Assembly (NCBI GenBank): GCA_965649825.1
Contig: OZ287695.1
Coordinates: 911,081 to 975,080, forward strand
DNA length: 64,000 bases
From: Penicillus capitatus
Taxonomy: Eukaryota > Plantae > Chlorophyta
Direction of reading: 5' to 3'
A model generated the notes under the pieces. The model was not told where the DNA came from. It did no database searches and worked only from the letters and a program-made list of their open reading frames with translations. Position numbers and translations under genes: made by a program. How positions within the stretch are numbered: position 1 is the first letter of the stretch; each line of letters begins with the position of its first letter. Shown here in pieces: positions 235 through 64,000 of the stretch.

Positions 235-836
235 AAATCCGATCGACCAGGTTGCGATGTTCTTTCAAGCGCAGTTGTTTCTTCGTTGTTGATGAAACCG
301 CTTTTGGAACGAATGCACTTAATGTAATGCAACGTCGAGATACATTCCTCTGCAAAGATGATAGAGGTTCGGATGCAGCTTAAAACAATCACCAAGTCCA
401 GTCTAATGGGAGTTAAGACTTCACAGTAAACAGGCATCGAAGACATTCCTGAACTCTGAATGCATGCCGCTCATTCATTCCACAACAAAGGTGAATAATA
501 TGCTTCTATACGAAATGTCGCGGATAGACAGAAAGAGTGAGAATGACGGTATTGTCATCAAACAACAGATGATGTTGAAATGCCTTTGATGTTTCAGTGT
601 CTGTCCTAAGATTCTCAGTCGATACATTGAATTCGTTAATCATCAACGTTCGATAACGGAGCCACGATACTAATGACCTCTCTCCTCTAGCATACAGAGA
701 AGCAATCAATCAATTGTTTGTTTATTCAAACGTGTTGCAGAAGTATTCGTCATAACATGTAAGCATGTGAGATAAAGTAAGGATTAGAGAGATGTAGATG
801 ACATGTTAACAGCCGAGAACATATTGGACGGCCCCC
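235..836 (-). repeat. Conserved 3' flank of protease-ankyrin gene 1; homologous to ~5560-5777, 55576-56110 (inverted) and 62490-63089
   Basis: Shared blocks such as gagatacattcc...gcaaagatg, cattcccacaacaaaggtga and aaagagtgaga...attgtcatca recur at all loci, in the same orientation relative to the ankyrin stop codon. Confidence 0.8.
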
Positions 837-5777: not shown

Positions 5778-8700
5778 TCATGGACGCAGGAGTCTCTCAA
5801 GGGCGAGTCGTGTCGATTTAGAACATTCAACGGAAGTACGCAGACAGATAACGCCAAAAGGCGTTTCTTTATCTTCGTTAGTTGCAGTCTTCGATGCCCC
5901 GGCATCCACTAGAACCTGAATGAAATGCACCGTCAAGCACTGATGTGCTACGTCTGACTTGCCTGTGCCATTTTTGGCTCTCCGTCACGTGCGGTTATGT
6001 GAAGTGGCGTTTCTCCATTGTCATCGACCGCATCGATATCGGCCCCTTCTTCAAGCAACAGCTACAGCAACAACAAACGTGGACAAGAAAACAAGAGCAA
6101 ATGAGCATGCACCTGCAAAATTTTGGGGTTACTGCTGTAGTTGGCGGCATCGTGTAGAGGAGTTTCTCCATTGTAAGCGACCGCATTGACCTCGGCCCCT
6201 TCTTTGAGTAACAGCTACATCCAACAACAACGTGGACAAAGAAACAGAAGCGAATCGCCAGGCACCTTCACAACTTCGTAGTTACTGCTGTAGGAGGCGG
6301 CATTGTGAAGAGGAGTATCTCCATCGTAATCGACCGCATTGACGTCAGCCCCTTCTTTAAGTAACAGCTACATCCAGCAACGTCCACAGGACAACAGAAG
6401 TAAAACGGCAAGCACCTTCACGTATTCGAGGTTAGCTGCATAGTCGACGGCAAAGTGAAGCGGAGTGTTTCCATCCTTGTCGACCGCAGTGATGTCGGCC
6501 CCTTTTCTAAGTAACAGCTACACCCAACGACAGACATGGACAAAAAACAGTAGCAAATCGCCAGGTACCTTCACAATGTCGGGATCATCATGGAAGGAGT
6601 CGAAGAAGAATACCAGCCTATCACCGTACCCGACGGCAAGGTGAAGTGGAGTTTCTCCATCGTCATTCACCTCATTGATGTCGATCCCTTCTTCAAGCAA
6701 TAGCTACAACCAACGACGGACGTAGACAAGAGAAGAGAAGCGAAGCGGTATGCACCTGCAGGATCTTGGCGTGATTACTGTGTTGGGCGGCAGAGTGAAG
6801 TGGCGTCCATCCGTCCTCGTCGACGACATCAACCTTCGCTCCGTGCTCGAGGAGTATCTGAAAAACGAAAGCTTCTGTCGATAAGACGACGAAGTGACCG
6901 TGGAGCCGACACCTTGACCACTTCGACTTCTGCGAAACTTGCCGCCCGATGCAAAACAGTAAACCCATCGTCCTTGGCCTGGTTGACATCCGCTCCGTGT
7001 TCAAGGAGAACCTTAACAGTCGAGTGTCTCTGGCAGAGGCGACGAAGTTAATGCGTAACTAACCTTGACCACTTCGGCGTCGTGGTTAGACACAGCTTCA
7101 TACAGAACAGACCATCCGCTGTCCGTGACCCTTTTAACCTTCGCTCCATTCTTGATAAGGAGCTGACAGTCGACAATATCTGTTGATCAGGTAACGAAAT
7201 GTATGCGGCACCTACCTCGACCAACTCGGCGTCTGCGTTGTTCGCTGCTTCAAACAGAGGAGTATCGTCTCCGTCGTCGACCTTATTGACGTCTGCTCCG
7301 TGATTAATGAGTACCTATCTCTCTAAGACACTTGCCGAGGCGCGCGGGAGCACATCAGATCTCGCCTGCGCAGTTTTCGTGTTTCCGTAATAAGCAGCAT
7401 CGTGTAGGGGTGTGTTTTGATAGTCATCAACGGCGTTCACTTTGGCTTCGTGATCCAGAAGAATCTGTGAACAGACATCTGAGCAGACGCGTGAGATGAC
7501 ATTGAAAGTTCACCTTTGCCATACTCGCGCGTCCGTTCACTGCTGCCACATGCAGCGGAGTATCGCCGTACTTGCTGGGTTTGTCCACTCTTGCACCATA
7601 TTCCAGAAGCACCTTCAAATAGAAAAAACATGGCTATAAATGGACAGAACCGAACAGTCTAAACTCTGTACTCCAAAGAACTTAGAGCATACCCACCTTC
7701 ATGCATTCTGAAGCATTATAATACGCCGACCAGTGCAACAAAGCAAACCGCTTCTGTTCCACAGAGGTCGAGAGAGCAGAGCGTCTTGTGGCGTATGTGT
7801 ATATATATACGGGCCATGGAACATAGGACTCGTAGGAGGAATCTGGATTCAGCTCCTCCAAAAGTACGGCTTCCAACTTCGGGGCATTGTTATCTTTAAT
7901 GGATTCAATAGCTTCCTACAGAACCATCAGTTCATTCACCGCGATCTCCATCGTCAGTGCAACCTCGATCATCTCTTTCCGTGAGAGTTTCGTCATCCTC
8001 GCGCGTTCCTTTTCAATCTTCCGCTTTTCCGACTGTTCCTTTTTCGTTTCATTGTCTGGCGATCGCTCTATTGCAGGAGGTTTTGCGTCCTCGTCACCAT
8101 CTGCTGATGGTTGCTCCACCGATTGCTGTCGATTTTTCTCCTGTTCTAGGCGATCAGACACGAGGAACGGATGTCTAAAACAGTTTACCTCTGGATCTTC
8201 GTCGATCTTCTCGAGAATCCAGCCCCAGAATGCACCGATGCTTGTATAGATGGTCGGCGATGTGTCGGTGCAGTCTTCGGACCCAAATGATGTTACACCA
8301 ACAAGCAGGTCGAATCTTGGACTCCCGGTGGCTATGCTGCCTCCAAATCTGTTGGGAATCAACAGTGGACCGCCAGAATCGCCTTCAGGAGAAGAGGCTT
8401 GGCAGAGAGCAATGCTAACGGGTAAGTGTTTAACCTTCGCATGTGTTCTCATTCTCACCCGAGAATCCAGCACAGATCGAGTGTTTCTTGACGGCGTCTT
8501 GCAGAAATCCTTCGCAGTGGCGGTGATTTACATAAATAAGGCTGTCTGCTATCTGTAGAGAGTTTGGATGATTTCCAGTCTCGTCCTGTCCCCAGCCCAG
8601 AGCGGTAAACAACTTACCCTCTCGGAATTCTCCTCCCTGAATGTCTATCGATGGCAGTGTGAGGTTCGCATTCCTGTCTAATTTGACCAAAGCGATGTCG

Positions 8701-9268: not shown

Positions 9269-10056
9269 GTCAACGGCAAGAATGTGTTTGTGGTAGAACG
9301 TGCGCTTAAGTAACGCGAACGGTTCAGTCATTAAATGCTTTCCCTTACCCGTCGCTGCGTGCTGGCCATTGAGGAAAGACGGATGGAACCGTTCGTACGT
9401 CTCCTTCGTAGATTTGGATTCCTAGACACCGAGATGACGCATGGGAGAGATCTAATGCTTCCCGCAATGCGTATGCATACACACTTCTCAACTGTGCTTA
9501 TCACTTTAAATACTGTTTATACATACAAGCAGTGGTTGATGGTAGATATGACATCGAACTGAGAAGAACGCAATCACGGAAGGAACACCGTCTCATGCTA
9601 CAAAACAGAGCTAAGCAGTAGATTCCGCCTAGGTTTAGGGTAGTAACGTTTCTATTTTGTTCACGGCATCGAGAAAAGCAATACCGAGCGTTGGGCCTGC
9701 CAGCGAGTTCTCCCGCAGCGTCGATAGAAACGAAGGCCTCTTCTGCTGGGATGCACATTAAAGATATGTTTGTCATCTGAACACTGTGTATGTCCTTAGG
9801 TAACCTGCCTATTTCACTCTTTGCGGATTCGTCTGTTTGGAGAAACAACGGTTCGAAGCTCGGAGTGGCGGTAATGGTTGAGAACTCTTTCAGTGGCGCA
9901 TTTTGACATTTGCGGTTTGTTTGAGTAATCGTCGATGCTGCACGACGATCAAAGGGATACTGAGGACGGTTTTTCCTATTTTATCAACTTCCATTCGTAT
10001 AAGATACACCTTTATGCTTTCCGCTCGTGCTGCATCTGGATTTCGTGTGTGAAACG

Positions 10057-12298
10057 ATGACCGTTCCCAGAATAATAGCTTTTCTAGCATTGGCACTTTT
10101 GTTGTCGACACACAGTAGCTTCGGTCAAATCATCGACTCCATTCCAAAACTCAGACGCTTCATAAGGTCACAGGAAGCCATTGTGAAAGACATCGCCGAG
10201 AACGCAACGAAATGGCATGCGGACAGAATCCGTCTCGTCCGCGACTGCGAATGCTCCAGACACGCCTGTTCTAATGACTTCCTAAACGTCGAGTGCGTCC
10301 ACCACCTCGGGGAACTGGACATTTGTAAAACCGACGGACGACGGGTGGACTACAACAACTCCATCTTCCGCACGCCTCGGGGCACGAATCCGAAGAGGCT
10401 CACCGACAGCCTCAAGGAGAGCATCTGCGTCTACAAGCAGTTAGAAGATGTCGTCAAGGAATACGGTCGCGATGAGATTGGATGGATTTACATCGGTAAG
10501 AGTAATTCTCAGTCCTTCGACGTTATCCAGTTCTACAGGAACACGAGATGGACACTTTCGACGGTATCCAGGCACGGCGGATTCGCGTCATGACGAGAAT
10601 GGAGATGAGTTGTGGAATTTATGCAGACTGTACGATCCTCGCCTTCGTCCATGGTATATCGGAGCCAGTACTGGACCGAAGGACCTCGTTCTGGTGGTGG
10701 ACAAGTCCGGCTCCATGCTGGACTACATAGATTTTGCGCAAACGAAGACCAAGTGGGATTTGATTTCTCGAGCTGTGTCCGAAATGATCGACACGTTTAC
10801 CTTTGCCGACTTCATCTCTCTAGTGACGTTTTCGGACTCGGCTGGGACAGCTTTGCATGGAACGGGTCTTGTCAGAGCCACCGAAGAAAATCGTCAGAGA
10901 CTGAAAGAAGCACTTCGAAATGAGACTGCCGTGGGGCAAACCAATTTTACAGCAGCATTTGAAGCAGCCTTCCCTTTGCTATGGGAGGGCTGCGACACCG
11001 AGCCGCCGCAATGTTCGAACTGCGAGAAGATCATTCTTTTTCTGACGGACGGCAGAGACACATCTGGAGAGAATCGAGCAAGCATCAAGCCGTCCAAGAT
11101 GGCCGCCGTCATTGAACGCCTTCAAACAGAACTTGCCAACAAAACAGGCAAACGTGCAACCATCTTCACCTATTCGATGTCCGACGATGCCGACGATGGC
11201 ATCCCCAGACAGATCGCCTGTGCGAACAATGGAGCCTGGGCCTTCATCGGGTTCCACACAAAGACACTGGACGCCTTGAACTCATACTACCTGTATGAGG
11301 CGGCCAAGCGCCGTACAGAATCGCCGTTCTGGATCGAGCCCTACGAGGATGCGAGCGGACTGGGACTCGTCACCACAGTGGCCATGCCTTTCTATGCCCG
11401 CGGAACGAACGATGTGCCTGATGTGTTCCTGGGCGTCGTGGGACACGACATCATTCTGAGCGAACTGGATTTCGAAGAAGTGACCAGAGATCAAGTGATC
11501 AGTGCTATTATACCCCGTTCAAAGGACTGTCATCTCGCAGACAACACTCCCTGCGAGTTGCAGGTCTACAGGAATGCGCACGATAGGAGATCGCGCTGTG
11601 CTGATCCCCATCACGACATATCCAAGCACTCTCCGTCTGCTAAGTCAAAGGAGCCGTACGTCCTGTGTCACGTGCATAAAGGTATGTACTACAAGAGATC
11701 GGTGGAAGAGGCGACCTGGAGAGAGGCCGTTTCCAAGTGCGAGGACATCGGAGGAAGCCTTGTGAGTGTCAAAGATGAAGAGGAGTTGGCTTTTCTGGCA
11801 AATCTGGCATCGATTGACGGATCTTGGATTGGCGCAGAGAAAACGCCAATGGCAAGCTTTGGCTGGCTGGACGACTCTTTACCGACTCTGTCACGGGACT
11901 CCGAGTTTTGGGGTATCCAGGAACCTCTGGCTGTACATGGAACCGAAAACTGTGTCGCCATCGACACGAGAGGCGTCATCGCCAACCTGAAAGCCATGCC
12001 ATGCAACAACCTCGCGACATACATCTGCAAGTTTGACACTGACGATACGTGTCCTGCCGGCATCGCCAGCCCAGGAGTAAAGGGATACTTCAAGGTTCCC
12101 CCTCTGGACAAGTGCGTCGACGAAATCGAAGCTCTCGATGAGACGAAGCCTGTCGAAGACGTCGAGGATCTGTCGACGGATGATGTCATGTGCCCCTTGG
12201 GCAGAAACAGAACGAACGCGGAACTTCAATGCTGCGGCGCCGACGACGATCTCTGCAGGACTATCTCCAAGAGAAGGTCTTTCAAGAAGCAATGTTAG
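10057..12298 (+). CDS. alpha2delta-like (Cache + VWA) secreted/membrane protein with C-type lectin domain, paralogue 1; C-terminus uncertain
   Basis: Signal peptide MTVPRIIAFLALALLLSTHSSFG; YDPRLRPWY; VWA with MIDAS DKSGS...TNF...FLTDG; Cache motif PYEDASGLGLVTTVAMP; CTLD C..IGGSLVSV...WIG...ENCVAI...YIC; one intron near 10496-10538. Confidence 0.8.
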
Positions 12299-17729: not shown

Positions 17730-19902
17730 ATGAAGTTTGTTTGGAAAAACAATGCACTTCGAACGTTGCTGCTCCTGTTGTTCGTTCATGGGGTTCTGAC
17801 CGAAGAGCTCAACGAGTTCATTAAAGAGCAAGAAAAGGTTGTAAAGGGTCTGGCCAAGAACGCAACGAAATGGCATGCGGACAGAATCCGTCTCGTCCGC
17901 GACTGCGAATGCTCCAGACACGCCTGCTCCAACGACTTCCTGGACGTCGAGTGCGTGCATAACCTCGGAGAGCTGAAGATGTGCGAGGCCGATGGACGAC
18001 GGGTGGACTACGGCAATTCCATCTTCCGCACGCCCTTTGGTACAGACCCAGAGACGTTGACTGGCAACCTCAAGGAGAGCACCTGTGTCTATAAGCAGCT
18101 GGAAGATGTCGTCAAAGACTACAGTCGCGATGAGATTGGATGGATATACATCGGTAAGGGCAATTCTCACTCCTTCGATTTTGACATGGTCTGCAGGAAC
18201 ACGGGATGGTCACTTTCGCCGATACCCAGGCACGGCAGATTCGCGTTATGTGGATAATGGAGACGACCTGTGGAACTCATGCAGATTGTACGATCCCCGT
18301 ATTCGTCCATGGTACATCGGAGCCAGCACTGGACCGAAAGATATTGTTCTGGTGGTGGATAAGTCTTGGTCTATGCTGGACTACATTGGTTCCGAGAAAA
18401 AGACAAAATGGGATTTGGTATTGGATGCCGTGACAAAGATCCTTGATACCTTTACTTTTGCCGATTTTGTTAGCGTCGTTACGTTCTCTGACGAGGCTGA
18501 TACCGTTCTGAAGGGGCCAAGTCACGTCAGAGGACAGCGAGAGAGCCTGAATCTCTTGAAAGAAGCATTGAAGGAAGAAATTCCGGTCGGCAGAACGAAT
18601 TTCAGTGCTGCATTCGACGCAGCGTTTCCCGAACTGTGGGAAGGATGCGATGAGGAACCTACACAGTGTTCCAACTGCGAGAAGATCATTCTCTTCCTCA
18701 CCGATGGCCAAGATACGTCAGGCGATGACAGGGAGAGCATCAAGCCCTCTCAGATGGCGATCAAGATCGAAAAGCTTCAGCAGACGCTCATGGAGAAAAC
18801 AGGCAAACGTGCATCGATCTTTACCTACTCAATGTCCAATGAAGCCGACGATGGCATCCCTAGACAGATCGCCTGTGCGAACAACGGCGCATGGGCGTTC
18901 ATCGGACCAGATACAAACGTACTGGACTCCTTGAATTCATACTCTCTGTATGAGGCGGCCAAGCGCCGTACAGAAACGCCGTTCTGGATTGAGCCCTACG
19001 AAGATGCCAGTGGACTGGGGCTCGTCACCACAGTGGCGATTCCTTTCTACGCCCGCGGAACGAATGATGTGCCAGATGTGTTCCTGGGCGTCGTGGGTCT
19101 CGACATTATTCTGAGCGAACTGGACTTCGAAGGAATGACCCAGGAAGCTATCTTCAATGCGTTTTTTGATCGTTCCAGTCGCTGTGTCCTTGCCGATACG
19201 ACGCCCTGTGAGATCCAGGTCTACAGAAACTCCCATGATGAAAGATCTGTCTGTGCCGATCCTTATCCCAATGTCCTGGACGCGCCTCCCGTTGCCGAAT
19301 CCTATGAACCTTATGTTCAATGCTACGAGCACAATGATCATTACTATAAGAGATCGTCCGAAGAGTTGCCATGGGACGAGGCCTTATCAAAGTGTGAGGA
19401 CAGTGGAGGCGAATTGGTCAGCGTCAAGGACAAAGAGGAGCTTGCGTTTCTGGCAAATCTGGCCTCGCACGATGGATCATGGATTGGTGCTCGGAGAGAT
19501 CGGTCAGGAGACTTTGCCTGGCGTGATCGATTTCTGACAAAACTGAAGAGCAGCTCCGATTTCTGGGGATTGCTGGGAGCCAGTCGTGGAAATGATAAGG
19601 ATGCAGATTGCGTGGCCATCGATACGAGAGGCGTCATCGCCAACCTAAAATCCCGGCCATGCAAAAATCTCGCGACGTACATCTGCAAGTTTGACAGCGA
19701 TGATGCGTGTCCTGCCGGCGTTGCCAGTCTAGGAGTAAGGGGGTACTTCAAGGTTCCCCCTCTAAACGAATGTGTCGATGAAGTCGAAGCCCTCGATGAG
19801 ACGACGCCTGTCAAAGACGTCAAGGATCTGTCGACGGATGATGTTATGTGCCCCTTGGGCAGAAACAGAACGAACGAGGAGCTTCAGTGCTGCGATGTAT
19901 GA
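17730..19902 (+). CDS. alpha2delta-like (Cache + VWA) protein with C-type lectin domain, paralogue 2; C-terminus uncertain
   Basis: Signal peptide, YDPRIRPWY, DKSWS MIDAS, FLTDG, PYEDASGLG and CTLD; colinear with 10057-12298 including the intron position. Confidence 0.8.
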
Positions 19903-27345: not shown

Positions 27346-29132
27346 ATGCGCAGGCGCTACTCTCCAGCTGCCCTTCGGGACCGCCACCCTCTCACGTTAG
27401 CATTGTGCCTTTCATTGTGCGTTTCAGCAGGTATCCCGTCGTGCGTTTCGTACCGTTATCTGACCGGGTTGGCGGTTTTCGTAGTTGTCCTCTTTGTCTT
27501 CTACCTCGCCGAGCCACAATCGGTTCGCGATGCATTGCGTCGTATGGTTGGAAAAGATACATCGGACAAGTCAGAAGGCATCACAATTCCGACACGCGAA
27601 AGACCTATCAAGGCGACCACAGTGTCCGAAGTGGGCGAAAGAATCGGCGAAGTGACACCACAGTCCGGATGGTTCTCCGAGGACAACCAACCATTTCATT
27701 CGGCCATTCTTATTGCTGGTTCATCCGGCTATGCAAACTACAGACATCAAGCAGACGCGTGTCATGCATTTCAATTACTAAAGCATCTGGGCATACCATT
27801 GGACCAGATTATTACGTTTATATTTGACGACATCGCACACCATCGAGACAACCCATACCCTGGTCAGATCTTTAACCGTCCAGGTAAGGGCGGCGCGATC
27901 GTCATCGATACAGATCGCAAGACGGCGACGTGTTGTTAGGTGGGCAGAATGTCTATCCTGGATGTGCGAAGGACTATAGAGGATGGGATGTGAACAAGGC
28001 GACGGTGTTTGCTGTGCTAAGGGGCGATGCCAGAGCTGTGAGAGGTGTCGGAAGTGGTCGAGTGATTAAAAAAGACCCGCGGCAACGGATCTTCTTTTTC
28101 TATTCAGATCACGGTTCAGCGGGAACCATTTCCATGCCAGTGGGACCGCCGATCTTTGCAGACGAGCTGCAGCATGTTCTCAAGATAATGGCCGATAAGA
28201 ATACCTTTCGTGAGATGGTGATCTATCTGGAGGCCTGTAACGCTGGATCCATGTTTCGAGGATTTCATATGGACAAAGTCTACGCTGCGACGGCGGCTGA
28301 TGCTTATGAGAGCTCGTTTGCAACGTACTGTCCCGATTATGGCCACAAGACACGACACATAGAGCCAAACGCCACTTACGTTGGCGCATGTCTGGGCGAT
28401 CTTTTCAGTGTCTCCTGGATGGAAGATACAGAAGACCACGACGTCTCAATGGAGAAAGTCGAGTCTCAAGTCGGTCGCGTGACCGAAAGAACGAGCAACG
28501 CCCGCACGTATTACTATGGCAGTCACGTCAAGACCTACGGCGACAAGAGAGAGAACATCCGACAGCAGGTTCTGGGCAACTACCTGTCCTATTTCGCTGC
28601 GCCTTCTGGATGGACACGGTCTGACTCAGAAAGGCTGTTCTCCAAGATGAAGAGACCAACCACAAATCATCGAGATCATTCGAAGAGGGAGATCCACTAT
28701 GATCAGCGAAGCGCTGATTTACTATTTTATTATCAGAAGGCTCTGCAGATGGCCAACGATGGTGATGCTGTCCAACAATTGGAGGCAGAAGTGACGAGAC
28801 GATATCAAGTGGACACACTCGTCCGCCGTGTCATCCAAGATCAGTTTGATCAGAACCGTCTACCAATGGACGCCTCTGTTGAAGCCTATGCCACCCAAGA
28901 AGTCTTTTTTCGGGAGAATCGTCCCGTCGTCGACGATTGGGATTGTCTAAGGGGTATGTTGCAGGTTTTTGAAGAGAATTGCGTCAAACTCGACGACTAC
29001 TCGCGTCAATACACATGTACCTTTGCCAATTTCTGCAATGCTGGTCTCAGTCCTGTGGATATCGTGCCGGGTCTATTGGCGCATTGTCCGTTTATCCATA
29101 CCTCGACGAACACTGTCCCTGTTATGCGTTAA
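27346..29132 (+). CDS. Legumain / vacuolar processing enzyme (peptidase C13), paralogue 1, with N-terminal hydrophobic anchor
   Basis: [22 protein letters not shown], catalytic SDHG and [17 protein letters not shown]-terminal VVDDWDCL; start uncertain. Confidence 0.9.
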
Positions 29133-30234
29133 TAATCGATGCATCATCAACATGATTCAAATGAAACGCCTGTGCCATCTATGTTGGGTAGGGGACGTGC
29201 CTGCAGGCAGACACTTATGCGCATGCGAACAAGCAGTTCTGTGCCCTTGTACAGTTAGATGCATCTGTCCTGTTAAATCAGACCCCTTAATAAGACGTGT
29301 CAGTAAAGGAAGTGACCATACTGTGGCAACCAAAGGCCGTGGCCGTTAGGAGGTTGGTGTTGTCTCGTTTTTATTGCTTCCACTGATCAGGATGGCCACT
29401 TTGAGGCTTAGTTCATCGCTGCTTTGAAGATGTGACGGTAGAGATCTGTTCGACGATGCGTTTTGGTAGGTGTGTGCTGCATCTTAATGAGCCCTCTTGT
29501 GTGTCCGTTTACACATCATGTGTGTATCGCTGTTGGATGGTAGCCGAGCACTGTGCAGTGTTCGTAGAAACTAGAACGACTCCCAGGTCACTTCTCTCTG
29601 GGAACTCGGTGCGTTAGATGCGCCACTGAGCATTCATGTGTTTGACACGGCGAATAGAAATTTTGATTCGGCCTTTCGCTTTGTTGACACAAAAGACGGT
29701 CAAACTGCCGTTATCAGGCAGATGTCTGTCATGCCGATCGCATTCTGCGCAAAGGTGGTTTTGAAGATGATAACGTCATCACTTTTGTCGGTGGTGACGT
29801 CACAGCAGCCTTAGTCCCTATGAAGAGCAGATCGTCAACGCGTCGGGTCCAGTGCCCTCTCGATCGCTGCGATGTTGACCTGACGTGACGGGTGGCGTTG
29901 ACATGTGTCCTGGATGCGCAAAGAACGACACAGGCGCCGCTTCTTGTGCACAGGATTAACATCGTGACGGTTCTGAAAAGCTACGCTGATGCAACAAGCG
30001 GCGTCGTAAGTAGCTGTGTTCGCGATCTGCGTCCTGATCGATGCGTCTTCGTGTTCGATTTGCGAACGTGGCTCCGTCGACTGGCTCCAATTGCCGACAG
30101 GACTGCTCTTGTATACCCGTGATCTGAAGAGCATATTCGATCGAACGAGCCACACAATGTTCTCGAAGACTGGTGTTCGATCTCGAAGCCTGTAATGCTA
30201 GCGGTGTCGTTCAAAGATTCGGCCATGAGAATAC

Positions 30235-30364
30235 ATGGAAGATAGTAACAGTGGCGGCGGATGGAAGATAGTAACAGTGGCGGCGGATGGAAGATAGTAA
30301 CAGTGGCGGCGGATGGAAGATAGTAACAGTGGCGGCGGATGGAAGATAGTGACAGTGGCGGCGG
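30235..30364. repeat. Minisatellite, 5 x 26 bp (atggaagatagtaacagtggcggcgg)
   Basis: Direct reading; four perfect copies and one copy with a single substitution. Confidence 0.95.
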
Positions 30365-31999: not shown

Positions 32000-33736
32000 A
32001 TGCACTCGTTCAGTCTGCCTCGTTTGTTGCTCCTTGTCGGACTTTGTTCGCTGTCCGCCACCACCTTTGCGCGTAAGCATCCACTCGTACCCTTTGCGTT
32101 CGTTTGTCGACCGATACATCACAGGTCCTGTGCGCGACTTTTGGCCCTTCCCGTGGTTTTTCCCGCCGCCGGAACCCACTGTCAAGCCGCACACCATTCC
32201 CAAACTCCGTATCAAAGAACTTCCGGCGCCATCTGCACCGTCGACGGTGAATTGGTTTTCCGCTTTTAACAAGAAATACCACTCAGCGGTGCTCATCGCC
32301 GGTTCGAACGGATACCGCAATTACCGCCATCAAGCAGATGTCTGCCACGCCTACCGCATTCTCCGCGAACGTGGGCTCAAGGATGATAACATCATCACCT
32401 TTGTTTACGACGACATTGCTTACAACAGCCTCAACCCATATGAAGGGCAACTCTTCAACAGCCCAGGTATGTGTGTGTGTTCGCACTCTGTCTGTGATGT
32501 TGACCTGATGTGACAGGTGGAAAGGATGTGTATCCCGGCTGCGCTAAGGACTACACAGGCAGAGATGTGAACAAGGATAACGTCTTGGCAGTGCTGACTG
32601 GACGAGCCGACATCGTCAAAGGTGTTGGAAGCGGCCGCGTTCTGTTTCCCAATCCCAAGCAGCGCGTCTTTATGTTCTACAGCGACCACGGCTCCGTTGG
32701 CAGTATCGGAATGCCGACTGGACGTCCATTGACTGCCAAGGAATTGAACAATGCATTTGCTTACATGCTCAATATGGATTTCTTTCACGAATTGGTATTC
32801 TACCTGGAGTCGTGTGAGTCGGGGAGCATGTTCCACGGCTTCAACTATGATCAGCAGTCAAAGGTGTTGGCCGTATCTGCATCGTTGCCGGATGAGAGCT
32901 CGTACGCCACGTACTGCAGAGCGGATAAAAGCCACCCGATCTCGCCCAATGCCAGCTACATTGGCGCGTGTATGGGTGACCTGTTCAGTGTATCGTGGAT
33001 GGAATACGCAGAAGCGCACGATGCCGCAGAGGAGACGATCGATAAGCAACTGAGATACACGAACGATCGCACCAGCGATTTCAAGAAGTATGCCATGGGC
33101 AGTCATATGATGATCTACTGTCGCAAAACGATGCCCATACTGCAAGAAGTCATTGGCAATTTCTTGTCCTACTTCACTGTGCCCAGCGGACTATCTAAGA
33201 AGGATGCCTATTCAGCATCGCCGTCCTTGGAAGAAAACTCTTCGCGTGATACCTCTGTCCGCGACATCTCTGAGAGTAACGGAGATGAATACATGACGAT
33301 GGCGCAGAGAGATGCCGATCTGATGTTCTTGGTGAAGCGCTCGATGAGCAACGACTTCAAAGTTCGAGAAACTGCGACGAAAGAACTTCAGGAGACCTTG
33401 CAACAACGAGAGGAAGCAGACCGATCCATCCGATCCATCGTCCAGATGCTCATGGACAACGGTTTGCTGGAAAACAAGAAGAACGATGCAGATGTCGAGG
33501 CATATGTCACCAAGTTGTTTCTCAGAGGGGAAGACAAACAAGTCGTTGACGACTGGGATTGTTTTGAAAGCTTTTTGGATGTGTGGTATCAAATGTGTGG
33601 AGAGATGGATGATTACTCCAGACAATACACCAGAGCCTTTGCCAATCTATGCAATGCTGGCATCGGCGTTGCGGATTTTGCGCAGGCCACAATGAATGCT
33701 TGCGCAACGAACAGAATCACGTACTCGGCGACATAA
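32000..33736 (+). CDS. Legumain / vacuolar processing enzyme (peptidase C13), paralogue 2, with cleavable signal peptide
   Basis: [24 protein letters not shown], intron, then [18 protein letters not shown]; SDHG; ESCESGSMF; [12 protein letters not shown]; VVDDWDCF. Confidence 0.9.
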
Positions 33737-47851: not shown

Positions 47852-50159
47852 ATGAGCGCAAACAATAACCCCGATGGAAGTGCGTATTGCCGCCTGGCGT
47901 CGCCGCTTTCGATTTCGCGTTCTGCAGGTGGGCAAGGCAGCGACAGTCGACAGTCGCTTTTCGGTTTTGGCCAGGCCACTCCAACCTCTGCACCGCAACG
48001 TGAGATGCCGCACGATCGTGTGTCCGAAACCCATCGACGGTGTGTGCGCGACAGAGGGCGGTTTTGCGAACGCATCCTCGGCGCATCCGTTCGCATCGGG
48101 GTCCGCTCCGCTCTTTAGCGGGAGCTCGCCGTTTGGTGTCCCGGCTTCCGGCGGTACGTCGTCTGTGACGTGTTCGCTTCCGACGATCGATATTGTGTGC
48201 GTAGGCGGGCTGTTTGGGAACACGACGGGGTCAGTTTTTGGGCCGCCCGGCAATGCCCCCGCCTCATCTTCCTTCCCCGCTTTCGGCATCACCTCACAGG
48301 CGCCATCGTTAACGACGCCGACCCTGAGCAGTTTCAACCCTGCATCTGCGGGGTCTCCTCTGGGCTCTGCGGCGACAACGGGGTTTGGATCGGGATCGGC
48401 AGTGGGATTTGGTGTTGGTCAGGGAACAGCGACGACCATGTCGACACCGACTTACTTCGGAGTGACGTCTGGAGGGACGGGCGCGTTTGCGAGCGCCCCA
48501 TCTCAGAGCAGTCTCTTCCCAGTGCCCTCGAGTGCACCGTCCGCAATTCCCTTCAGTGTCCTCGGCGGATCGACAACGAGTGGAATCGCCTCTGGATCGG
48601 GAGGATTGCCGAGTGGAATGTCGTCATCGTCGACGCCTCTCTTTCCTTCGCAACCGAGCTCCACTCCCTTAGGATTTGTCCCGTCGACCGTGCAGAGCTC
48701 TGGATCCAGTTTCCTGGGCGGTTCATTGGCGACATCAACGCCAATGCTCTTTGCCGGCGTGAGCGGGACACAAGCCGGCATCGGCGTCGGTGGCAATAGT
48801 TTCTCTTTGGGAACGGGCAGCTCGTCGAGTGGAGTGGCTTTCCCATCCGCTTCTTCTTCCTCACTCTTTCAGCCGACAATGAGTGGAGGGTTTGGATTCG
48901 GGCCCACATCTGCCGCCAGTACATCCAGTGTCCCATCGGAGACGCCGACCTTCAACTTGGGCTCCACTTCTGGAAGCAGTTTCCTCAGCGGGGCCACTAT
49001 CTTCTTTTCCTCATCTACCTCATCCTTTGCACCGAGTGCCTCCTCTCCCGCGATGCCAAGCAGCAGTTCCACGGCGAATCCCTTTTCGACAACATCGACT
49101 GGGAGCTTTCAGTGGACAGCAACCCAACCGTCGCCACGATCTCCCGGAAACAGAGCCACAGGCAGTGCCTTTTCAGCAGCTCAGCCAGCGCAGCCTAATG
49201 TGACATCCAGCCCTGGCATCAGTCCATTAGTCTCTTTGGCAGCGGCGACGCCTATTCCAAACATTGGATCCCAAGGAGCAATGCCGCATAGATGGTCCCC
49301 TTCAAGGTCGCCGCCTTCAGAGATTCGTCCAGAAACGTCGTCTCCCCCTACAGCTGCACAGTCACCGCCTGTATCTTCGCCTCCGGTCGCGAGCTCCCCG
49401 CCGTCACCGCAGACCAATGCGTTCTCCAGTGGACCTGCTGTTCAGCCGTCAGCCCCCGTGGCCTCATCTGCTCCGGTTGCACTGTCGAGTGCTTCCCAGT
49501 CAGCTGCCGCAGCCTCCTCCGCTGCTCTGGCAGCACCTGCAAGAGGACAAGAGATTGGCAGCATCTTGCACGTGGCGCTTCCATTGGGCCACCAAATGGA
49601 AGATGACTTCCGCTTCATCTCAGGTCATACATCCTCATAGACGATGCCGTTGCCGATGGGACTGTTGTGCAGATCGATTAGCGGAACGGGATGTCGATAT
49701 CATCGAACGCGGACAACAGCTTAATAAGGTCATCGAAGAGTACAAAGATCTCGTTTCCCGTCAAAAATACTGCGAACAAGAGATGCAGCGTCTGGAAGCC
49801 CTTGTCAATGTACGCCTCCTTATTCCTCACCTCTCCTCTCACCTCTCCGTTTCCCTCTGTAGCATACGCAGCAAGTCAGCAAGGTCTTTATGGAACGGAT
49901 GAAAAATCATGCCGGCGGAACGCAAGCGGCATTGAGAGCCGTCTTCGATCGTATGTACGATGGACTGATCGAGTGCAATGCAACGTTTTCTGAACTGGAA
50001 GATATCATGGAGAAAGTCTATAGCGAACGAACAGGTCCGATAGAAGCGCGTACAGCGCCCGAAGCCCCTTCCATCTTGGAAGTCGAAGAAATCATGGTGG
50101 CGATCAAAGATTTCGAAGAACGACGCAAGAGAATAGCAAACATGCTCAATATGGTGTAA
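47852..50159 (+). CDS. FG-repeat nucleoporin, Nup62/Nsp1-like
   Basis: Long Ser/Gly/Ala-rich region with LFG/PFG/FGFG/FSLG motifs followed by spliced coiled-coil exons (DIIERGQQLNKVIEEYKDLVSRQKYCEQEMQRLE). Confidence 0.65.
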
Positions 50160-52784: not shown

Positions 52785-55575
52785 ATGAAACGGTTTTGTG
52801 TTTCGCGTTACCGTTTCCGCTTTCGGTTTTCGTTACTGCTTCTCGTGCACCTCCACCTAGCAAAATGTCAAGAAAAAGAAGGTACTGTCACCCAGGTTGG
52901 CATTTCCGATGCGGATATGTCCTTTAACGGTTCAGGAGCATCGGCCTCTGAGCCACGAGTCACTTCCTATATCATCGTGAGTTTGTATAGCGTGCATTAG
53001 TTCAAGTTTCACGCCCGTTTTTCTCATAGGGAGAAGAAGCACCTGAGGAACGGTTCCCTTACGTTTGCAGTCTCTCAAGACGCGAAGATGGAATCCACCG
53101 CTGCGGTGGAACACTCATTCGACAACAGTGGATCGTCACAGCGGCACACTGCGTCGACCCCGCCTATCCAAATAGCATCGGCAGAAATCCCCTTATCCGT
53201 TGCGGTATTCACAGGCTCGACTCAAGTGATCCCGGCAAGGTAACCTATTCGCGGCCATTCACTTTCCTACCAAGATGGAAGCTGCTAGCTGTTCAGCGGA
53301 GAGGAGAGTCACTGGCCCGAGTCTTGGACCGGCGACGTGAAGGACGGATACGACATCGCAATCGTCAAACTAAACAGAGAAGCGAACCTCAAATTGCCGT
53401 CGATAGACACTCAGGCAGGCGAATTCCGCCCAGGCAAAATATTCACTGCACTCGGTTGGGGACGGAACAAGACTGGGCACTTTCCAACCTCTCTACACAT
53501 GGCAGACAGCCTTGTGTATGTGAGTAATGACCAGTGCAAAGAATCTCTGAAAGACGCCGTCAAGACGCATTCGATTTGTGCTGGATTCTCGGAGGAGAAT
53601 GAGAACACATGCAAAGGTTCAATGATTGCTTGCGGGCATAACTTTCTTCTAAGACTCTTCTGCTGAAGGTGATTCTGGCGGTCCACTGTTGATTCCTAAC
53701 AGTTTTGGAGTCTACACAGCAGCTGGAAACCCAGAATTCGACCTGCTTGTCGGCGTGACATCCATGGGATCCAAGAATTGCTCCGATGGATCTCCTTCCA
53801 TCTATACAAGTATCGGTGCATTCTGGGATTGGATTCTAAAAGAAATTGGCAAAGAAGATGTAAATTCTTCACCAAATCTCTTGTTCTGTCCTGATCGCTT
53901 TGTGCAGGTGCCAGACCCATCAGAAGAACCTTCACCAACTGTTATGCCATTTTCAGAGGCAGATGAAGTCGCAGATGATGAACTGAAAGAGGAGTTGGAA
54001 CAGCAAGAACTTGAAGAATGGCGCAAAGAGATAAGAGGACTCTCGCAAGAACAGTTGATCAAGGTTGCATTAATAATGAAGATCGTTGCGAATCGACAGA
54101 CGGCTTTGTAGGAAGCGTATCGCTGCATAAAGGATGACGATGCCCTTAGGCTAGAAGCTGCATTCCTGGAAGGACTGGATCCAGATTCTTTCTACAAGAC
54201 CTTTCTTCAGATGCCATGGGGGAGTGAATGGGACCGCCTTGCGTTATTGCACTGGTCGGCAGTTTACAATGCGTCAGAAAGCACCGAGGTAGCACTCTCA
54301 TTCGAGTCCACTCTGGACTACAGAGTCTATATGATTCCCTTCTGTCTACTAAATCCTTGTACTCATACTTTGAAGGTTCTTCTAGAATATAACGCAACCG
54401 TTGACAAGCTCAACAGCATCAAAGAGACTCCTTTGCATCTGGCGGCTGGAAAAGGACACGCCAAGGTAGCAAAGGTAAATCTACAAAACAAGCTTCATCG
54501 TCTGCTTCGACGTCCATACTCAGATTCTCCTCGACCACGGTGCCGACGTTAAACTGGAACTGGTTGATAGATGGACTGCTCTGCATCTGGCAGCCCGTTA
54601 CGCAGACGCCGAAATGGTGGAGGTTTGTATCCCGTGCACTTCGTTGCCTCATCGACAGACAGCCTCGGTTGACTGCCAGATCCTCCTCGAGCACGGAGCC
54701 GACGTTAACCTGAAATTGGCTAACGGATGGACTGCTCTGCATCAGGCAGCCCGTTACTCAGACGCCGAAATGGTGGAGGTTTGTATCCCGTGCACTTCGT
54801 TGCCTCATCGACAGACAGCTTCTGTCGACTGCCAGGTCCTTCTCGAGCACGGAGCCGACGTTAAACTGGAATTGGTTAATGGATGGACTGCTCTGCATCA
54901 GGCAGCCCGTTACGCAGACGCCGAAATGGTGGAGGTTTGTATCCCGTGCACTTCGTTGCCTCATCGACAGACAGCTTCTGTCGACTGCCAGGTCCTCCTC
55001 GAGCACGGAGCCGACGTTAACCTGAAATTGGTTGATGGATGGACTGCTCTGCATCTGGCAGCCCGTTACTCAGACGCTGAAATGGTGGAGGTTTGTATCC
55101 CGTGCACTTTGTTGCCTGCCTCGTTGACAGACAGCTTCTGTCGACTGCCAGGTCCTTCTCGAGCACGGAGCGGACGTCGACGACGTAACCGCTTACGAAC
55201 AGACACCACTTCACCTTGCTGCGTCCGGAGGGAACCTTGAAGTCGTGAAGGTATACTTCTAATCTAACGCCGTTCTCCATTTTTCCTGTTGCAGTTGTTG
55301 ATCGCAGAAAATGTCTTTCTCAACGCAACAGATGTGGATGGAGATACTCCGCTTCACTATGCAGCAGAGGATGGCGAGTCAGAGACGGCAAAGGCGAGTC
55401 AGAGACAGCATTTTACAGTTTCATGATGCATTTCCAGGTTCTGGTGGATGCCGGGGCCTCGAAGACGATAACCAGCGATAGCGGAGACACGCCTTTTGAC
55501 GTTATTTGCACTGAAACTGACACTAAATGTTCTGCAGCGAAACGGTCCTCTCTTAAGAGACTCTTGCGACCATAA
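52785..55575 (+). CDS. Secreted S1 serine protease-ankyrin repeat fusion protein, paralogue 4 (7 repeat exons)
   Basis: Signal peptide [28 protein letters not shown]; [17 protein letters not shown]|DSGGP; junction intron 54064-54111; stop TAA at 55573-55575. Confidence 0.88.
54530..55155 (+). repeat. Four tandem ~156-bp ankyrin exon+intron units
   Basis: 99-nt exon + 57-nt intron (gtttgtatcccgtgcact...gactgccag) repeated; visible as the 52-aa period of ORF 54614-55240. Confidence 0.92.
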
Positions 55576-56230
55576 GGGGCCGTCTAATGAAGCACTCGGC
55601 TGTAAACCATATCATCTGGATAACTGTCTAGTCTTTAGTTGATCTAACAATACTTAATATTCTGAAAGAAACATTCCTGAAAAGTTCGAATGGAGGAAGA
55701 GTCGACTGATTGCTTTCTTGTATGCAAGAGGAGAGAGGTCACTAGGACCGTGGCTTCTGTTATTGATTGTCGACGATTGACGAACTCAATGCATTTGATT
55801 GAGAATCTCAGGTCAGAAACTGAAACATCAAAGGCATTTCAACATCATCTGTTGTTTGATGACAATAGCGACATTCTCACTCTTTCTGTCTATCAGTGAC
55901 ATTTCGTATCGAAGCACATTATTCACCTTTGTTGTGGGAATGAGTTAGCGGCATGTATCCAGAGTTTAGCAATATCTTCACTTTTGCTCACACTGTAAAG
56001 CCTGAACTCGCATTCGATTGGGATTGGCGATTGATTTAGGCTACGACCAAGTCTCTAGGCATCTTTCCAAAGGAATGTATCTCGACGGCGCGATTCGCGT
56101 GATCCTGAATAGGTGAGAGAAGAATACACGGAGAGGAACCCGCAGTCTGTTTCACATTGACTTAAGAAAATAAGCGTGTGTACAAAACTGTCGGATTTTT
56201 CCACAAGAAAACCAAACATCGATTGCGAAA

Positions 56231-58559: not shown

Positions 58560-60750
58560 GACTCGACGCTCTTCTGTGAACCTCATTCTTAGCCGAAAAT
58601 TGAAGATACTGCCCGAAGCGCAGTTCAGATTTCGAAAACACAGATCGACACTGCAACCTCTATGGAGACTCACAACCGATGCGATGGATGCCATAAATCG
58701 AAGACAAAGAATGCTGGCGATCAGTTTTGATTTGGAAGGGGCATACGATCGAGTCTGTCTAACCATCCTTTGGAAGAAGCTACATGATGCACACTTTCCG
58801 GCTTATTTGCTCCGCATTCTCTGGAACATGACACACAAGCGATCGGCGCTGATAAGTTCACAAAGAGAATAACATCAGTTTAGACCGGAACGAGGACTGG
58901 TCCAGGGAAGCCCCCTCGGCCCTATCCTATATGCCATCTACCCAAAAGACATTGCAGAGGAAATTCCCCCAGAGGTACACCCGCTCTTGTATGCAGACGA
59001 TTTGTTGATCTACACCCTGGACACTGACGACAATCGTAGACGACTGCAGCAAGCCATTGGCACTAACGAAGCATGGTGCTCCAAGCACGGAATGCAACTG
59101 AACGCTTCGAAGACTCAGGCCATTATCTTCCGACGCAACTTTGACTCTTCTACTCCTCCCTCAAGTGTCCTTGGAGAAAACATCACATATCGGCCAAAAA
59201 TGAAGTACTTGGGCGTCCTACTTGACTCGAAACTCTATTTCGATCACCACATGCAGGAAAGGGTCACCAAGAGCTTACAACGATTGAACACAATTCGAAG
59301 ATTAACTCGTGTCCACTGGGGCGCCCAGCCAGGAATTATTCGGAGACTCTTTCTTCAATGTGTCCAACCAATGATACTATACGCAAGTCCGATATGGGCC
59401 CATCGTGTGAGAATTCTCTCTGACCAAAAAGCGCTGGACCGTACTACCAGACATGCCGGAATCGCAATCGGCGGAGTACTCGCCACAGCTTCACTGGAAG
59501 CAGTCACTCAACTTGCACATCTACATCCTCTATCAGACCTCGCCATGTGGACGCTAGTGATTCACGCCGCCTCGTCGACAGCGCTGGCTGAGGATTTCAA
59601 TCGATCCTCTTCCGGAGGAGGAGAATTCCTCTTTTACATGGTGCGCTCTTAGAGCATGTTCCATGGTTCTGTGCATTTACTTACAGTGGCATTCACATTT
59701 ACCACCCGACGCCCATTGTCAATTCACCGTTCAATCGTTCAATTAGGAGACTCGTGCTTCCATCCGTCGCTTCACATGTCTCACAGCGTCTGCGACGATT
59801 CGTCGTCCACCTCACGTCTAACCGCATGCTCCGGTCTGGACTTGACCCGCGTCTTTTTAATTGCCCAATCTTCCGATTTTCTTGATCATGATGAGTCGCC
59901 GCTTCACCCTCCGGCCAGTCACTATCACCCGAGTGACTCACGGGGCGCCTCGGCGGGATTCGAACCCACGCCTCTTGAGAAAACCTCAAGTGTGCCAACC
60001 ATTACACCACGAGGGCGATCCTCTTCCGGAGCTATTCACCTTACGTCTACGGACTTCCTTAGAGCTGAGTTAATGCGTATCCAGAAATCCCAGTTACCAT
60101 TAGACAGAAATGGCTCTGTCGAGACGATTTCAATACTTATCAAAACTCGGTTAGGACGACGACGATTCAAACAACAGACGTGGCAGTTCTATGAATAGCA
60201 AGCTTCAAGACAATGGCACAACAGTGACCGGGGTACTCTCTTGAAACAATTGAACTGTAAATATTGTATCCACCAACGTCCATGGTTCCAAGATCTGAGC
60301 TGGACCATGGCAAGTATCTCACACATCAATCAATTACTCTCGGGACATCTCCCAACGTTAGAATACCTACGAAACAAGGAAATCGAGATAGACACCGGAC
60401 GGATTATGCAGAGGGTGTGGGAAGCAAAGAGAAGCAATGGATCACCTTCTCCAGTGCGAATCCTTGAGAGAGAAACGAAGACAGCTGTTCTACCAAGACG
60501 ATCCGCCAATTAATGAACTAGTAGGAACGCTGGTCCAAGAAGCCCGACTTTACTTTCGTTTTGCAGCATTCTGCAAAGACATCTTCCGTATACTCAGGAG
60601 AGAAGCAAAATGAAACAACTGTCTCGAACCGAGCCTGCATGTACTTTTAAAACAACGTAATGCACACAAACAGTAAGAACCTAACCAATTATGTACGAAC
60701 CACCAGGAGAACATGGGCGATATGCCACTGGCGAAGCCCCTCCTGGATTT
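58560..60750 (+). mobile_element. 5'-truncated, decayed non-LTR retrotransposon (LINE) ORF2 with reverse transcriptase; interrupted by a SINE
   Basis: QFRFRKHRST, SFDLEGAYDRV, QGSPLGPILY, YADD, KYLGV, LYASPIW, late QLLSGH; in-frame stops at 58870 and 60196. Confidence 0.9.
59618..60015 (-). mobile_element. tRNA-derived SINE (398 bp) flanked by a 16-bp target-site duplication
   Basis: A box TGGTGTAATGG and B box GGTTCGAATCC in a cloverleaf-like head at ~59946-60017; cgatcctcttccggag at 59602-59617 and 60016-60031. Confidence 0.85.
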
Positions 60751-62099
60751 AAAAATCTCTCCCGACGCTCTTCTGTCGCGCGAGAGCCCTTAGCTTCTTC
60801 TAGTCTAAAATGTCGTCGTTTTGTCTTTCCAGTGGCACTTCGGGGCCGCTGCTGCTTTCAAGGTCGTTTAAGCGGCACTGTTTTAGCCATCTGATGATGC
60901 AGGTGAGCTTATTAAACACCCTCGTCTGCATTCGAGTTTGTTGCGCAGGGCTGAGACGAGGTTAACGATGGTATCCTGCCGAAATATGTTTTCTGCGACT
61001 CTGCTCTTCCATTCTCGGCGGCAAGAATCGCTGTCCACTTTCCCGTTCATCCTTCTTGAAGCCGTCGGATGCTTTGAAAACCTGGTGTTAGTTCCGGAGA
61101 CACTCGACTATTATGGAACTGAGTGATAGTTGCATTTGACACTTCAATATGGTTGCCGAGAGCGAGACTCTGCAACGAGTAACGATTTTCAAAAAGCCAG
61201 GTCGAAAGTGTCGGCTTTCTTTTTATTCTCACGACCTCACAAGGGAAACGAGCGTTTCTGCAAAGTCTTTTTTCCATTACTGAACAGATAGACATGCCTC
61301 TCGTAGTGTAGAAGAGGCCACTCGACTTGATATTTGTTCGCCGACATGCAATACGTGTCGTAGAGGGAATCCGTTTCTCTGACGCGAGTCTGCATGAGGC
61401 AGTCATCTATCCACACGGAGTCGAAACGGCACGCGTCGGAGGACGCGAAAGTGGAAGAACGCTTTAGGAAAGGAGGGATGGTTCGTCCACTGTCGCCGAT
61501 AGCAGACGCTTGCCGATCACTAACAGAGCATCAGTCGATATGTGAAAACTGCCTTGGCGACTGAACGGCGCTTAAGCCAAAGCACGATGGATTGGGTAAA
61601 CAAACGGATCGTAAGAAAAACAGCATGCTTCAAACACTTTCTGTTCGATTTCAAGCATCCCATTTCAATCCTTGCTTATCAGATACGATTCCTTGATATG
61701 CGTTGCAAAAACTCCTTACGAGGGAAGTCTACTGTATGAGCTACATTTATACGCGACAAAGTGCCGAGAGTGCTTAGACCAAAATTGTTGGAAATGTAGC
61801 ATCCTATCCACTGTTCGTAGCCGTCTGAAGCGGTTCGTTTCAGGGTAACCACCTTTGGCGCGCTGTCCATCAGATGCGACGGGTGCTAACCTCCGAGCCG
61901 ATTTCTTCATAACAGTCGGGCGATGGTTTTCGAACGTGCCCTGAAGTTCGCGACTGATAGCTGTTGGGGTTAGGAAATCCACAACCATCGTGGGTATTTA
62001 AAGACCGACAATCCTCTTGTAATTATCCTGAGTTCTTGGTGCTATCTCTGAGCGTTCATTGCCATCGTCGTCGCGTCGTTTCGACTCGTGTTTTGTTTC

Positions 62100-63089: not shown

Positions 63090-64000
63090 TCATGGTCGCA
63101 AGAGTCTCCTAAGAGAAGGTCCTTCTGAGTTAGCGCAATCAGGGTCAGCATAAAGACAGATAACGTCAAATGGCGTTTCTCTGCTGTTGTTGGTTACCGT
63201 CTTTGAAGCTCCGGCATTCACCAGAACCTATATGAAATGCACCGTGAACATTAACATGCTACCTCTGACTCGCCTTTGTTGTCTTTGACCGACCGTACAT
63301 CGCGGCTTTGTGAAGTGGAGTTTGTCCAGATTCATCGACCGCATCGACATCGGCCCCTGCGTCTAGCAGCAGCTACAACCAACAACTACGTGGACAAGAA
63401 CAGAAGGAGATTGGAGTGCACCTGTACAACTTCGGGGCTTCCATTGAAGCCGGCGGCTTCATGAAGTGGAGTTTCTCCATATTTATCGACCGCATCGACA
63501 TCGGCCTCTGCGTCTAGCAGCAGCTACAACCAGCGACAACGTGGACATAAGAACTAAGGCAAATCGACATGCACCTGTACAACTTCGGGGTTTTCATTGA
63601 AGCCGGCGGCTCTATGAAGTGGAGTTTGTCCAGATTCATCGACCGCATCGACATCGGCCCCTGCGTCTAGCAGCAGCTACAACCAGCAACAACGTGAACA
63701 AGAACAGAAGGAGATTGGAGTGCACCTGTACAACTTCGGGGCTTCCATTGAAGCCGGCGGCTCTATGAAGTGGAGTTTGTCCAGATTCATCGACCGCATC
63801 GACATCGGCCCCTGCGTCTAGCAGCAGCTACAACCAGCAACAACGTGAACAAGAACAGAAGGAGATTGGAGTGCACCTGTACAACTTCGGGGCTTCCATT
63901 GAAGCCGGCGGCTCTATGAAGTGGAGTTTGTCCAGATTCATCGACCGCATCGACATCGGCCCCTGCGTCTAGCAGCAGCTACAACCAACAACTACGTGAA
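63090..64000 (-). CDS. 3' part of an ankyrin-repeat gene of the same family (paralogue 5); 5' end outside the window
   Basis: 102-nt exons LLLDAGADVDAVDESGQTPLHRAAGFNGSPEVVQ in ~151-bp units; same GC-AG last intron and C-terminal cap (VICLYADPDC...LLRP*) as the other paralogues; protease domain not visible here. Confidence 0.8.

Follow-up and report, generated by a model that had tools for sequence, protein, structure and literature searches.

Short interspersed elements (SINEs) are defined in SINEBase as short interspersed repeats, usually with at least 100 copies (a number that is relaxed for repeat-poor genomes), which carry a tRNA-like head, are transcribed by RNA polymerase III (Pol III) and depend on long interspersed elements (LINEs); a head is regarded as tRNA-derived if its identity with a tRNA species is at least 60% over 60 nucleotides (nt) or more (PMC3531059). 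In the green alga Chlamydomonas reinhardtii the SINEX families were described, some of which are tRNA-derived (SINEX-3_CR and SINEX-5/6_CR) and most of which end in (ATT)n or (CTTT)n. Their partner LINEs, RandI/Dualen and L1, also have simple-repeat 3' ends, and simple-repeat tails other than poly(A) are common among green algal SINEs and LINEs (PMC3747384). SINE/LINE pairs of the stringent type are known from eel (UnaSINE1/UnaL2, with (TGTAA)n) and tobacco (TS/RTE) (PMC3747384). Here, a 64-kb stretch of contig OZ287695.1 from Penicillus capitatus (the window, to which all coordinates refer unless another locus is named) was analyzed. It harbors an element of about 400 nt that is very probably a tRNA-derived SINE, i.e. 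a non-autonomous retroposon of the type lacking long terminal repeats (LTRs), which was recently inserted in antisense orientation into a dead, 5'-truncated LINE. The SINE, its target-site duplications and its motifs are read on the minus strand.

The original prediction had described a 16-bp duplication around an antisense, tRNA-headed unit within a LINE, and this arrangement was found as described. An exact direct repeat (16/16 positions), CTCCGGAAGAGGATCG, brackets the SINE, and the unit between the two duplication copies comprises 398 nt (59618-60015). The junctions read ...GCTCCGGAAGAGGATCG / CCCTCGTGGTGTAATGG ... GGAATTCTCCTC / CTCCGGAAGAGGATCG ATTG..., where slashes denote the borders of the unit. 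Allowing up to two mismatches, no further match to CTCCGGAAGAGGATCG was obtained in the 64 kb, and in none of 100 shuffled sequences were two matches present. The G that closes the duplication in each case probably belongs to the SINE itself, as its base 1; the G at 60016 is common to both SINE copies (see below) and is also the position at which the Rfam tRNA alignment starts. If this assignment is correct, the unit measures 399-403 nt, and the duplications measure 12-16 nt in the window and 12-15 nt at the second copy.

Copies of the element were searched with three of its open frames, which were concatenated and compared with a collection of 5.8 billion proteins that includes the gene calls of this assembly. 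Two proteins were returned, namely the spurious open reading frame (ORF) of the window itself (P0001) and P0002, which is located on another contig, ctg340429_39x_l, of the same assembly (ENA ERZ25074695). On this contig the SINE occupies positions 9963-10360 of the fetched locus L001. Counted from the G of the head, 402 of 403 positions are identical between the two copies, the single difference being at position 269, and both termini are shared. The copy in L001 is flanked by a duplication of its own (15 nt, CCCCTCTCCAACGAG), which is unlike the 16 nt of the window, and its flanks are unique and unrelated to those of the window. The shared termini, the unique flanks and the long but different duplications together identify a discrete retroposed unit and hence a mobile element that generates long duplications of variable length. 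A segmental duplication is excluded by the unrelated flanks, the different duplications and the shared termini, and a 5'-truncated fragment of a longer element is excluded as well, since truncated copies would vary in their 5' ends. The element is thus a short (below 1 kb), interspersed, non-tandem repeat present on two contigs, and its 403 nt leave no room for a reverse transcriptase gene, as expected for a non-autonomous unit that bears the signature of target-primed insertion.

The LINE that hosts the SINE has plus-strand orientation. When translated, it matches Pfam RVT_1 (97 bits), and its only PDB matches are to L1 ORF2p. What is left of it comprises the reverse transcriptase, the C-terminal region and the 3' untranslated region; it contains in-frame stops and its 5' limit lies between 58124 and 58576. 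The 3' end reads ...GGATTTAAAAATCTCTCC without poly(A), and the family ends in CT-rich sequence, ...AAAAATCTCTC(C). When the SINE and one repeat were removed, the LINE frame was restored (...AEDFNRSSSGAIHLTSTDFL...), as had been argued from the window before. The closest relative among the 5.8 billion proteins, and the sole close one, is P0004 (72% identity); its locus, L003, belongs to yet another (third) contig of this assembly. Positions 7626-9136 of L003 align with 58823-59617 and 60020-60761 of the window at 83-90% nucleotide identity, the two blocks abut with an overlap of about 12 nt, and the similarity stops at approximately 60763. L003 is contiguous across the insertion site, has one copy of the target, CAACCCTCTTATGGAG, and encodes AEDFNQPSYGATHLTSADFL without interruption. 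L003 is therefore a paralogous empty site at both the DNA and the protein level, and its read-through confirms the argument from frame restoration. No target-site duplication was recognizable around the LINE copy in L003. Both known copies of this LINE family are degenerate, and as the SINE was inserted in a dead LINE, no functional consequence is expected. Apart from the LINE, the contig carries a gene for ribosomal protein uL29 (L003 1999-2391, minus strand) that is nuclear-encoded and of the chloroplast type; its PDB matches are only to L29 of solved chloroplast ribosomes and do not cover the first 35-45 residues or so, which form an N-terminal extension. A nuclear gene for plastid L29 is typically found in the green lineage.

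The head of the element was compared with RNA families and tRNA genes. It aligned over its full length with the Rfam tRNA model (RF00005; 40.7 bits, gathering score 29, local E 1.4e-6), which is the sole above-threshold Rfam match in the whole 64 kb; in the SINE, Rfam returned nothing besides this head. A weak match to YrlA (16.9 bits, gathering score 69) was rejected as a by-product of the T arm. The cloverleaf stems and Pol III boxes reported in the original prediction were both retrieved. The minimum-free-energy fold obtained with RNAfold is a cloverleaf with an anticodon stem of 6 bp and a loop of 5 nt, in agreement with the short loop reported before, but the arm can also be given the canonical form used by Infernal, in which CTTGA and TCAAG pair over 5 bp and the loop, GGTTTTC, has 7 nt and lacks U33. 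GGTTCGAATCC is a perfect B box, TGGTGTAATGG in the A-box region is identical to an 11-mer of real tRNA genes, and both are positioned at tRNA spacing. In the acceptor stem one nucleotide of the 3' strand is deleted, and no tRNA was called by ARAGORN. Given the rejection by ARAGORN, the missing 3' acceptor base and the absent U33, neither the head as a tRNA nor the locus as a tRNA gene is functional.

A pattern containing TGGTGTAATGG recovered 120 metagenome stretches of the tRNA-Gln/His type, 114 of which were called as tRNAs by ARAGORN, mostly as tRNA-His and tRNA-Gln. The best-aligned real tRNA, a eukaryote-type tRNA-Gln(UUG), is identical to the head in 54 of 75 columns (72%), and 78.9% identity over 57 nt was obtained with the tRNA in locus L105; as these tRNAs were picked by a pattern derived from the head, the match to tRNA-Gln is biased upwards. 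The head therefore lies above the SINEBase limits for a tRNA-derived head and, judged by its sequence, is read as most like tRNA-Gln and no longer functional. A parental tRNA was looked for in the fetched loci, and no tRNA genes were found there. As a separate observation, 16 of the 114 tRNAs that share the D arm of the SINE, GGTGTAATGGTTAGCAC (L006-L125, from JGI/ENA contigs), carry a CUA anticodon. They are labeled 'Pyl' by ARAGORN and resemble amber suppressors with a Gln/His-type body.

The head is followed by a unique body, as had been stated in the first description of the locus; over its length of about 320 nt no similarity was detected elsewhere in the window or in the fetched loci, and no Rfam family was assigned to it. 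The fold of the whole SINE is unremarkable (z = -1.6). An 8-nt tandem duplication, ATTGAACG x2, was identified by Tandem Repeats Finder at 59728-59743 (sense strand) and is present in both SINE copies. Two ORFs of 99 and 180 amino acids (aa) across the SINE were rejected as spurious, as their only homologues are themselves. Both copies end in ...GAGGAATTCTCCTCCTCC, are identical through the tail TTCTCCTCCTCC and diverge immediately thereafter. The absence of poly(A) was thus correctly predicted, but the element is not tail-less, since both copies carry the (TCC)3-like TTCTCCTCCTCC. The two duplications start with CTCC... and CCCCTCTCC..., respectively, and these initial bases coincide with the last 2-4 nt of the tail. 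Such microhomology between tail and target is the footprint expected of target-primed reverse transcription, from which the priming step may be inferred.

The termini and duplications also bear on the possibility that the unit is a solo LTR, a non-autonomous LTR element with tRNA-like sequence (Helenus/Ajax type) or a DNA transposon of the miniature inverted-repeat (MITE) type. LTR elements generate duplications of 4-6 bp and MITEs of 2-10 bp, whereas the duplications found here are 12-16 bp and variable in length, with maxima of 16 and 15 nt. The ends of the unit, GCCCTCG...CTCCTCC, lack the TG...CA of LTRs, and no copy that could form a pair was present in the 64-kb window or in the 20 kb of L001. 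A terminal inverted repeat, as expected for a MITE, is not present either (5' end GCCCTCGTGG, reverse-complemented 3' end GGAGGAGGAG). In favor of an LTR type, small-RNA-like sequences have been described in the LTRs of some non-autonomous LTR elements (PMC10886601). Considering termini, duplication size and the missing partner copy, small-RNA-derived LTR elements (Helenus/Ajax, Cassandra) and solo LTRs were rejected, as was a MITE or other DNA transposon on account of the missing inverted repeats and the long, variable duplications; an origin of either kind is very improbable.

Assuming a SINE, the following pathway can be proposed. Pol III would start at the internal promoter and read through the element, in which the only T4 lies in the anticodon loop. 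The endonuclease/reverse transcriptase of a LINE would nick a CT-rich target, and the nicked strand could pair with the UCC-repeat 3' tail of the transcript and thereby prime reverse transcription. A staggered second nick would then give rise to the target-site duplication of 12-16 bp. Mobilization by LINE machinery, as put forward in the original prediction, is in line with the duplications, the microhomology of the tail and the empty site; a partner LINE was not found. Two distant reverse transcriptase matches on large contigs (P0014 and P0023) were considered as partners and rejected, as they come from other samples.

The age of the insertion was assessed relative to the two haplotypes of the host. 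Cluster look-ups placed relatives with more than 90% identity to the legumain genes of the window on contig ctg340449_36x_l, 21 kb of which (L128) are collinear with 22513-43736 of the window at 98.4% identity. The coverage of the window contig, ctg338153_20x_l, is 20x, and that of neighboring or collapsed contigs is 36-39x. The window contig is therefore a haplotig, covered at half depth, from a diploid eukaryote that is heterozygous. The two SINE copies diverge by 0.25%, compared with 1.6% between haplotypes and 10-17% between the LINE copies. As the divergence of the SINE copies is below that of the haplotypes, the SINE insertions are young, and the recent insertion that had been suggested from the window is thereby upheld, with a difference at 1 of 403 positions; the LINE copies, judged by their own divergence, are old. 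The aligned allelic segment (L128) ends about 16 kb short of the SINE site. When the uninterrupted, reconstituted LINE ORF was used as a query, no near-identical read-through ORF was present in the 5.8-billion-protein collection, so the other haplotype probably lacks this LINE copy or is very different there. With respect to the contig itself, position 1 of the window maps to 75436 of ctg338153_20x_l and the record ends at 74663, so that the first approximately 770 nt (1-773) of the window seemingly extend beyond it.

These data also bear on whether the feature is due to misassembly, or is a tRNA pseudogene flanked by two repeats through mere coincidence. The contigs stem from a metagenome assembly and the window contig is covered at 20x instead of 36-39x, which could point to such an error, but the half coverage is explained by the allelic contig with 98.4% identity. 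The 403-nt unit is moreover present on two independent contigs with clean and different duplications, a 16/16 repeat was never reached in shuffled sequences, and excision gives the exact LINE frame with which the paralogue agrees. The probability of an artefact or of chance repeats is therefore practically negligible.

Several results weigh against the classification as a SINE and have to be set against the evidence given so far. Only two copies were detected in all, in contrast to the at least 100 that are usual for a SINE listed in SINEBase (PMC3531059), although the search was conducted via called ORFs and would miss old or degenerate copies. The allelic empty site was not seen, and five ORFs of the window near the SINE matched only the contig of the window itself. 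In local alignments, the 3' end of the SINE and that of the host LINE (last 60-200 nt) matched no better than shuffled sequences, so that no significant similarity between the host LINE and the 3' region of the SINE was revealed. An intact close relative of the host LINE was absent from the 5.8-billion-protein collection, and no partner LINE was found. Transcription by Pol III is predicted from the promoter motifs. Furthermore, the sole run of at least four T inside the SINE is the one in the anticodon loop, and no T-run that could act as terminator occurs within 180 nt downstream of either copy; the first T-runs 3' of the copies follow at distances of 184 nt and 541 nt. A T4 in the anticodon loop is also found in genuine tRNA-Lys(UUU) genes. 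Neither copy is an obviously good source gene.

The same observations are the basis of the one serious rival explanation, in which both copies are retropseudogenes of a single-copy cellular Pol III gene for a tRNA-headed non-coding RNA, which acts as master gene, and the family does not propagate itself from its own genomic copies. The relation of BC1 RNA to ID elements is the model for such a master gene. It would account for the presence of two copies only, for their near identity and for the lack of a nearby Pol III terminator at either of them, which makes them poor source genes. However, the protein-index search that returned the two copies gave no third locus with this sequence and free of duplications, the head has degenerated too far for a tRNA, and head, body and simple-repeat tail are arranged as in a SINE (PMC3531059). 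We consider a master gene clearly unlikely, and the distinction between it and a SINE family is partly one of definition.

With the SINE interpretation retained, its distribution was examined in other sequence collections. No further copies were present in the 64-kb window (BLASTN, word size 7), a back-translated scan of JGI metagenomes gave 170 pattern matches of which none was confirmed as the SINE, and an exact 24-mer scan of GTDB genomes gave none. The Halimeda genome paper yielded nothing useful on SINEs. The SINE family is probably uncatalogued, as the original prediction had also supposed, because there is no close reference genome and the best named relative of the legumains of the window in the 5.8-billion-protein collection is only 47% identical. 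A more far-reaching reading is that of a nascent SINE family, of very low copy number yet active, derived from tRNA-Gln and ending in a (TCC)n tail, in a siphonous/ulvophycean alga for which no SINE/LINE system has been described. This reading is tentative and on balance rather unlikely; if it were true, the genome would have to contain a LINE that is still active and that uses CT-rich targets for priming, without poly(A). On such a reading the insertion in the window may also be present on one haplotype only (hemizygous) and segregate as a polymorphism. The features of the locus are compiled in Table 1.

Table 1. Position of the SINE, its parts and its host LINE in the 64-kb window.
Feature	Position	Strand	Evidence or remark
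Upstream (5') target-site duplication CTCCGGAAGAGGATCG	60016..60031	-	exact 16/16 repeat; last base is the G at 60016
tRNA-derived head, 71 nt, degenerate cloverleaf	59946..60016	-	Rfam RF00005, fold, alignment with tRNA-Gln(UUG)
A-box-like motif TGGTGTAATGG	59999..60009	-	head positions 8-18; from sequence
B-box motif GGTTCGAATCC	59956..59966	-	head positions 51-61; in T arm of the Rfam alignment
Unique body, ~320 nt	59626..59945	-	
3' tail TTCTCCTCCTCC, (TCC)3-like	59614..59625	-	last 4 nt are the start of the downstream duplication
Downstream (3') target-site duplication	59602..59617	-	exact repeat; homologous single-copy target CAACCCTCTTATGGAG in L003
Host LINE, 5'-truncated, degenerate, interrupted by the SINE	58576..60763	+	RVT_1, PDB matches, in-frame stops, identity to L003

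In the genes of the window, exons are long and introns measure about 57 nt; the GC content amounts to approximately 50%. A tandem pair of legumain genes (peptidase C13 with prodomain) is located at 27930-29132 and 32510-33736; the closest named relatives are from Caulerpa lentillifera (47%, in expanded arrays), Ostreobium and Bryopsis, followed by vacuolar processing enzymes of land plants. From the gene content the host is probably a green alga, possibly ulvophycean or bryopsidalean, and the uL29 gene in L003 is the main clue to a plastid of the green lineage. Two further tandem paralogues, with VWA and C-type-lectin domains, are encoded at 10448-12298 and 18085-19902, are 7.66 kb apart and show 83-88% nucleotide identity. 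Arrays of ankyrin-repeat genes are found at 5937-6864, 54521-55240 and 63302-64000 with a period of 150-156 nt, apparently with one 33-aa repeat per exon, the exons being separated by introns (GT..AG) of some 57 nt. Paralogous blocks are inverted at the two ends of the window (833-3667 and 53007-55579). In addition, a near-perfect 26-nt tandem repeat, ATGGAAGATAGTAACAGTGGCGGCGG, is present in about 5-6 copies at 30209-30364, and an ORF of 588 aa at 47874-49640 is rich in Ser, Thr, Gly and Pro and resembles an FG-nucleoporin or a low-complexity protein.

If the SINE is confirmed, a (TCC)n-tailed family would join the very short list of green algal SINEs, which so far consists essentially of those of Chlamydomonas, and recent LINE-driven retroposition would be indicated for this alga. 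Near-identical copies with clean duplications would be good presence/absence markers and a route to the active partner LINE. There is no sign of a new mechanism, and a SINE in a dead LINE is not expected to affect any host gene. Compared with the generic tRNA-derived SINE (PMC3531059), the element is alike in its length below 700 bp, its tRNA head, its modules of head, body and tail and its dispersed copies. In the stringent pairs, a 3' region of 30-100 nt shared by SINE and LINE was demonstrated, whereas here no LINE was found whose 3' region matches; common to both are the tRNA head, the unique body, the varying sequence of the duplications and a short tail of simple repeats, which probably pairs with the nicked target during priming. 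The nearest known relatives in kind, as judged by their descriptions, are the SINEX families. The element differs from them in its (TCC)n-like tail, in that only two copies were seen, and in its host, which appears to be ulvophycean or bryopsidalean-like and not chlorophycean. They share with the element the occurrence in a green alga, the small size, the Pol III-type structure with tRNA heads in some families and, in most of them, tails other than poly(A), and as most SINEX tails are not poly(A), such a tail is to be expected in a green algal SINE rather than being odd.

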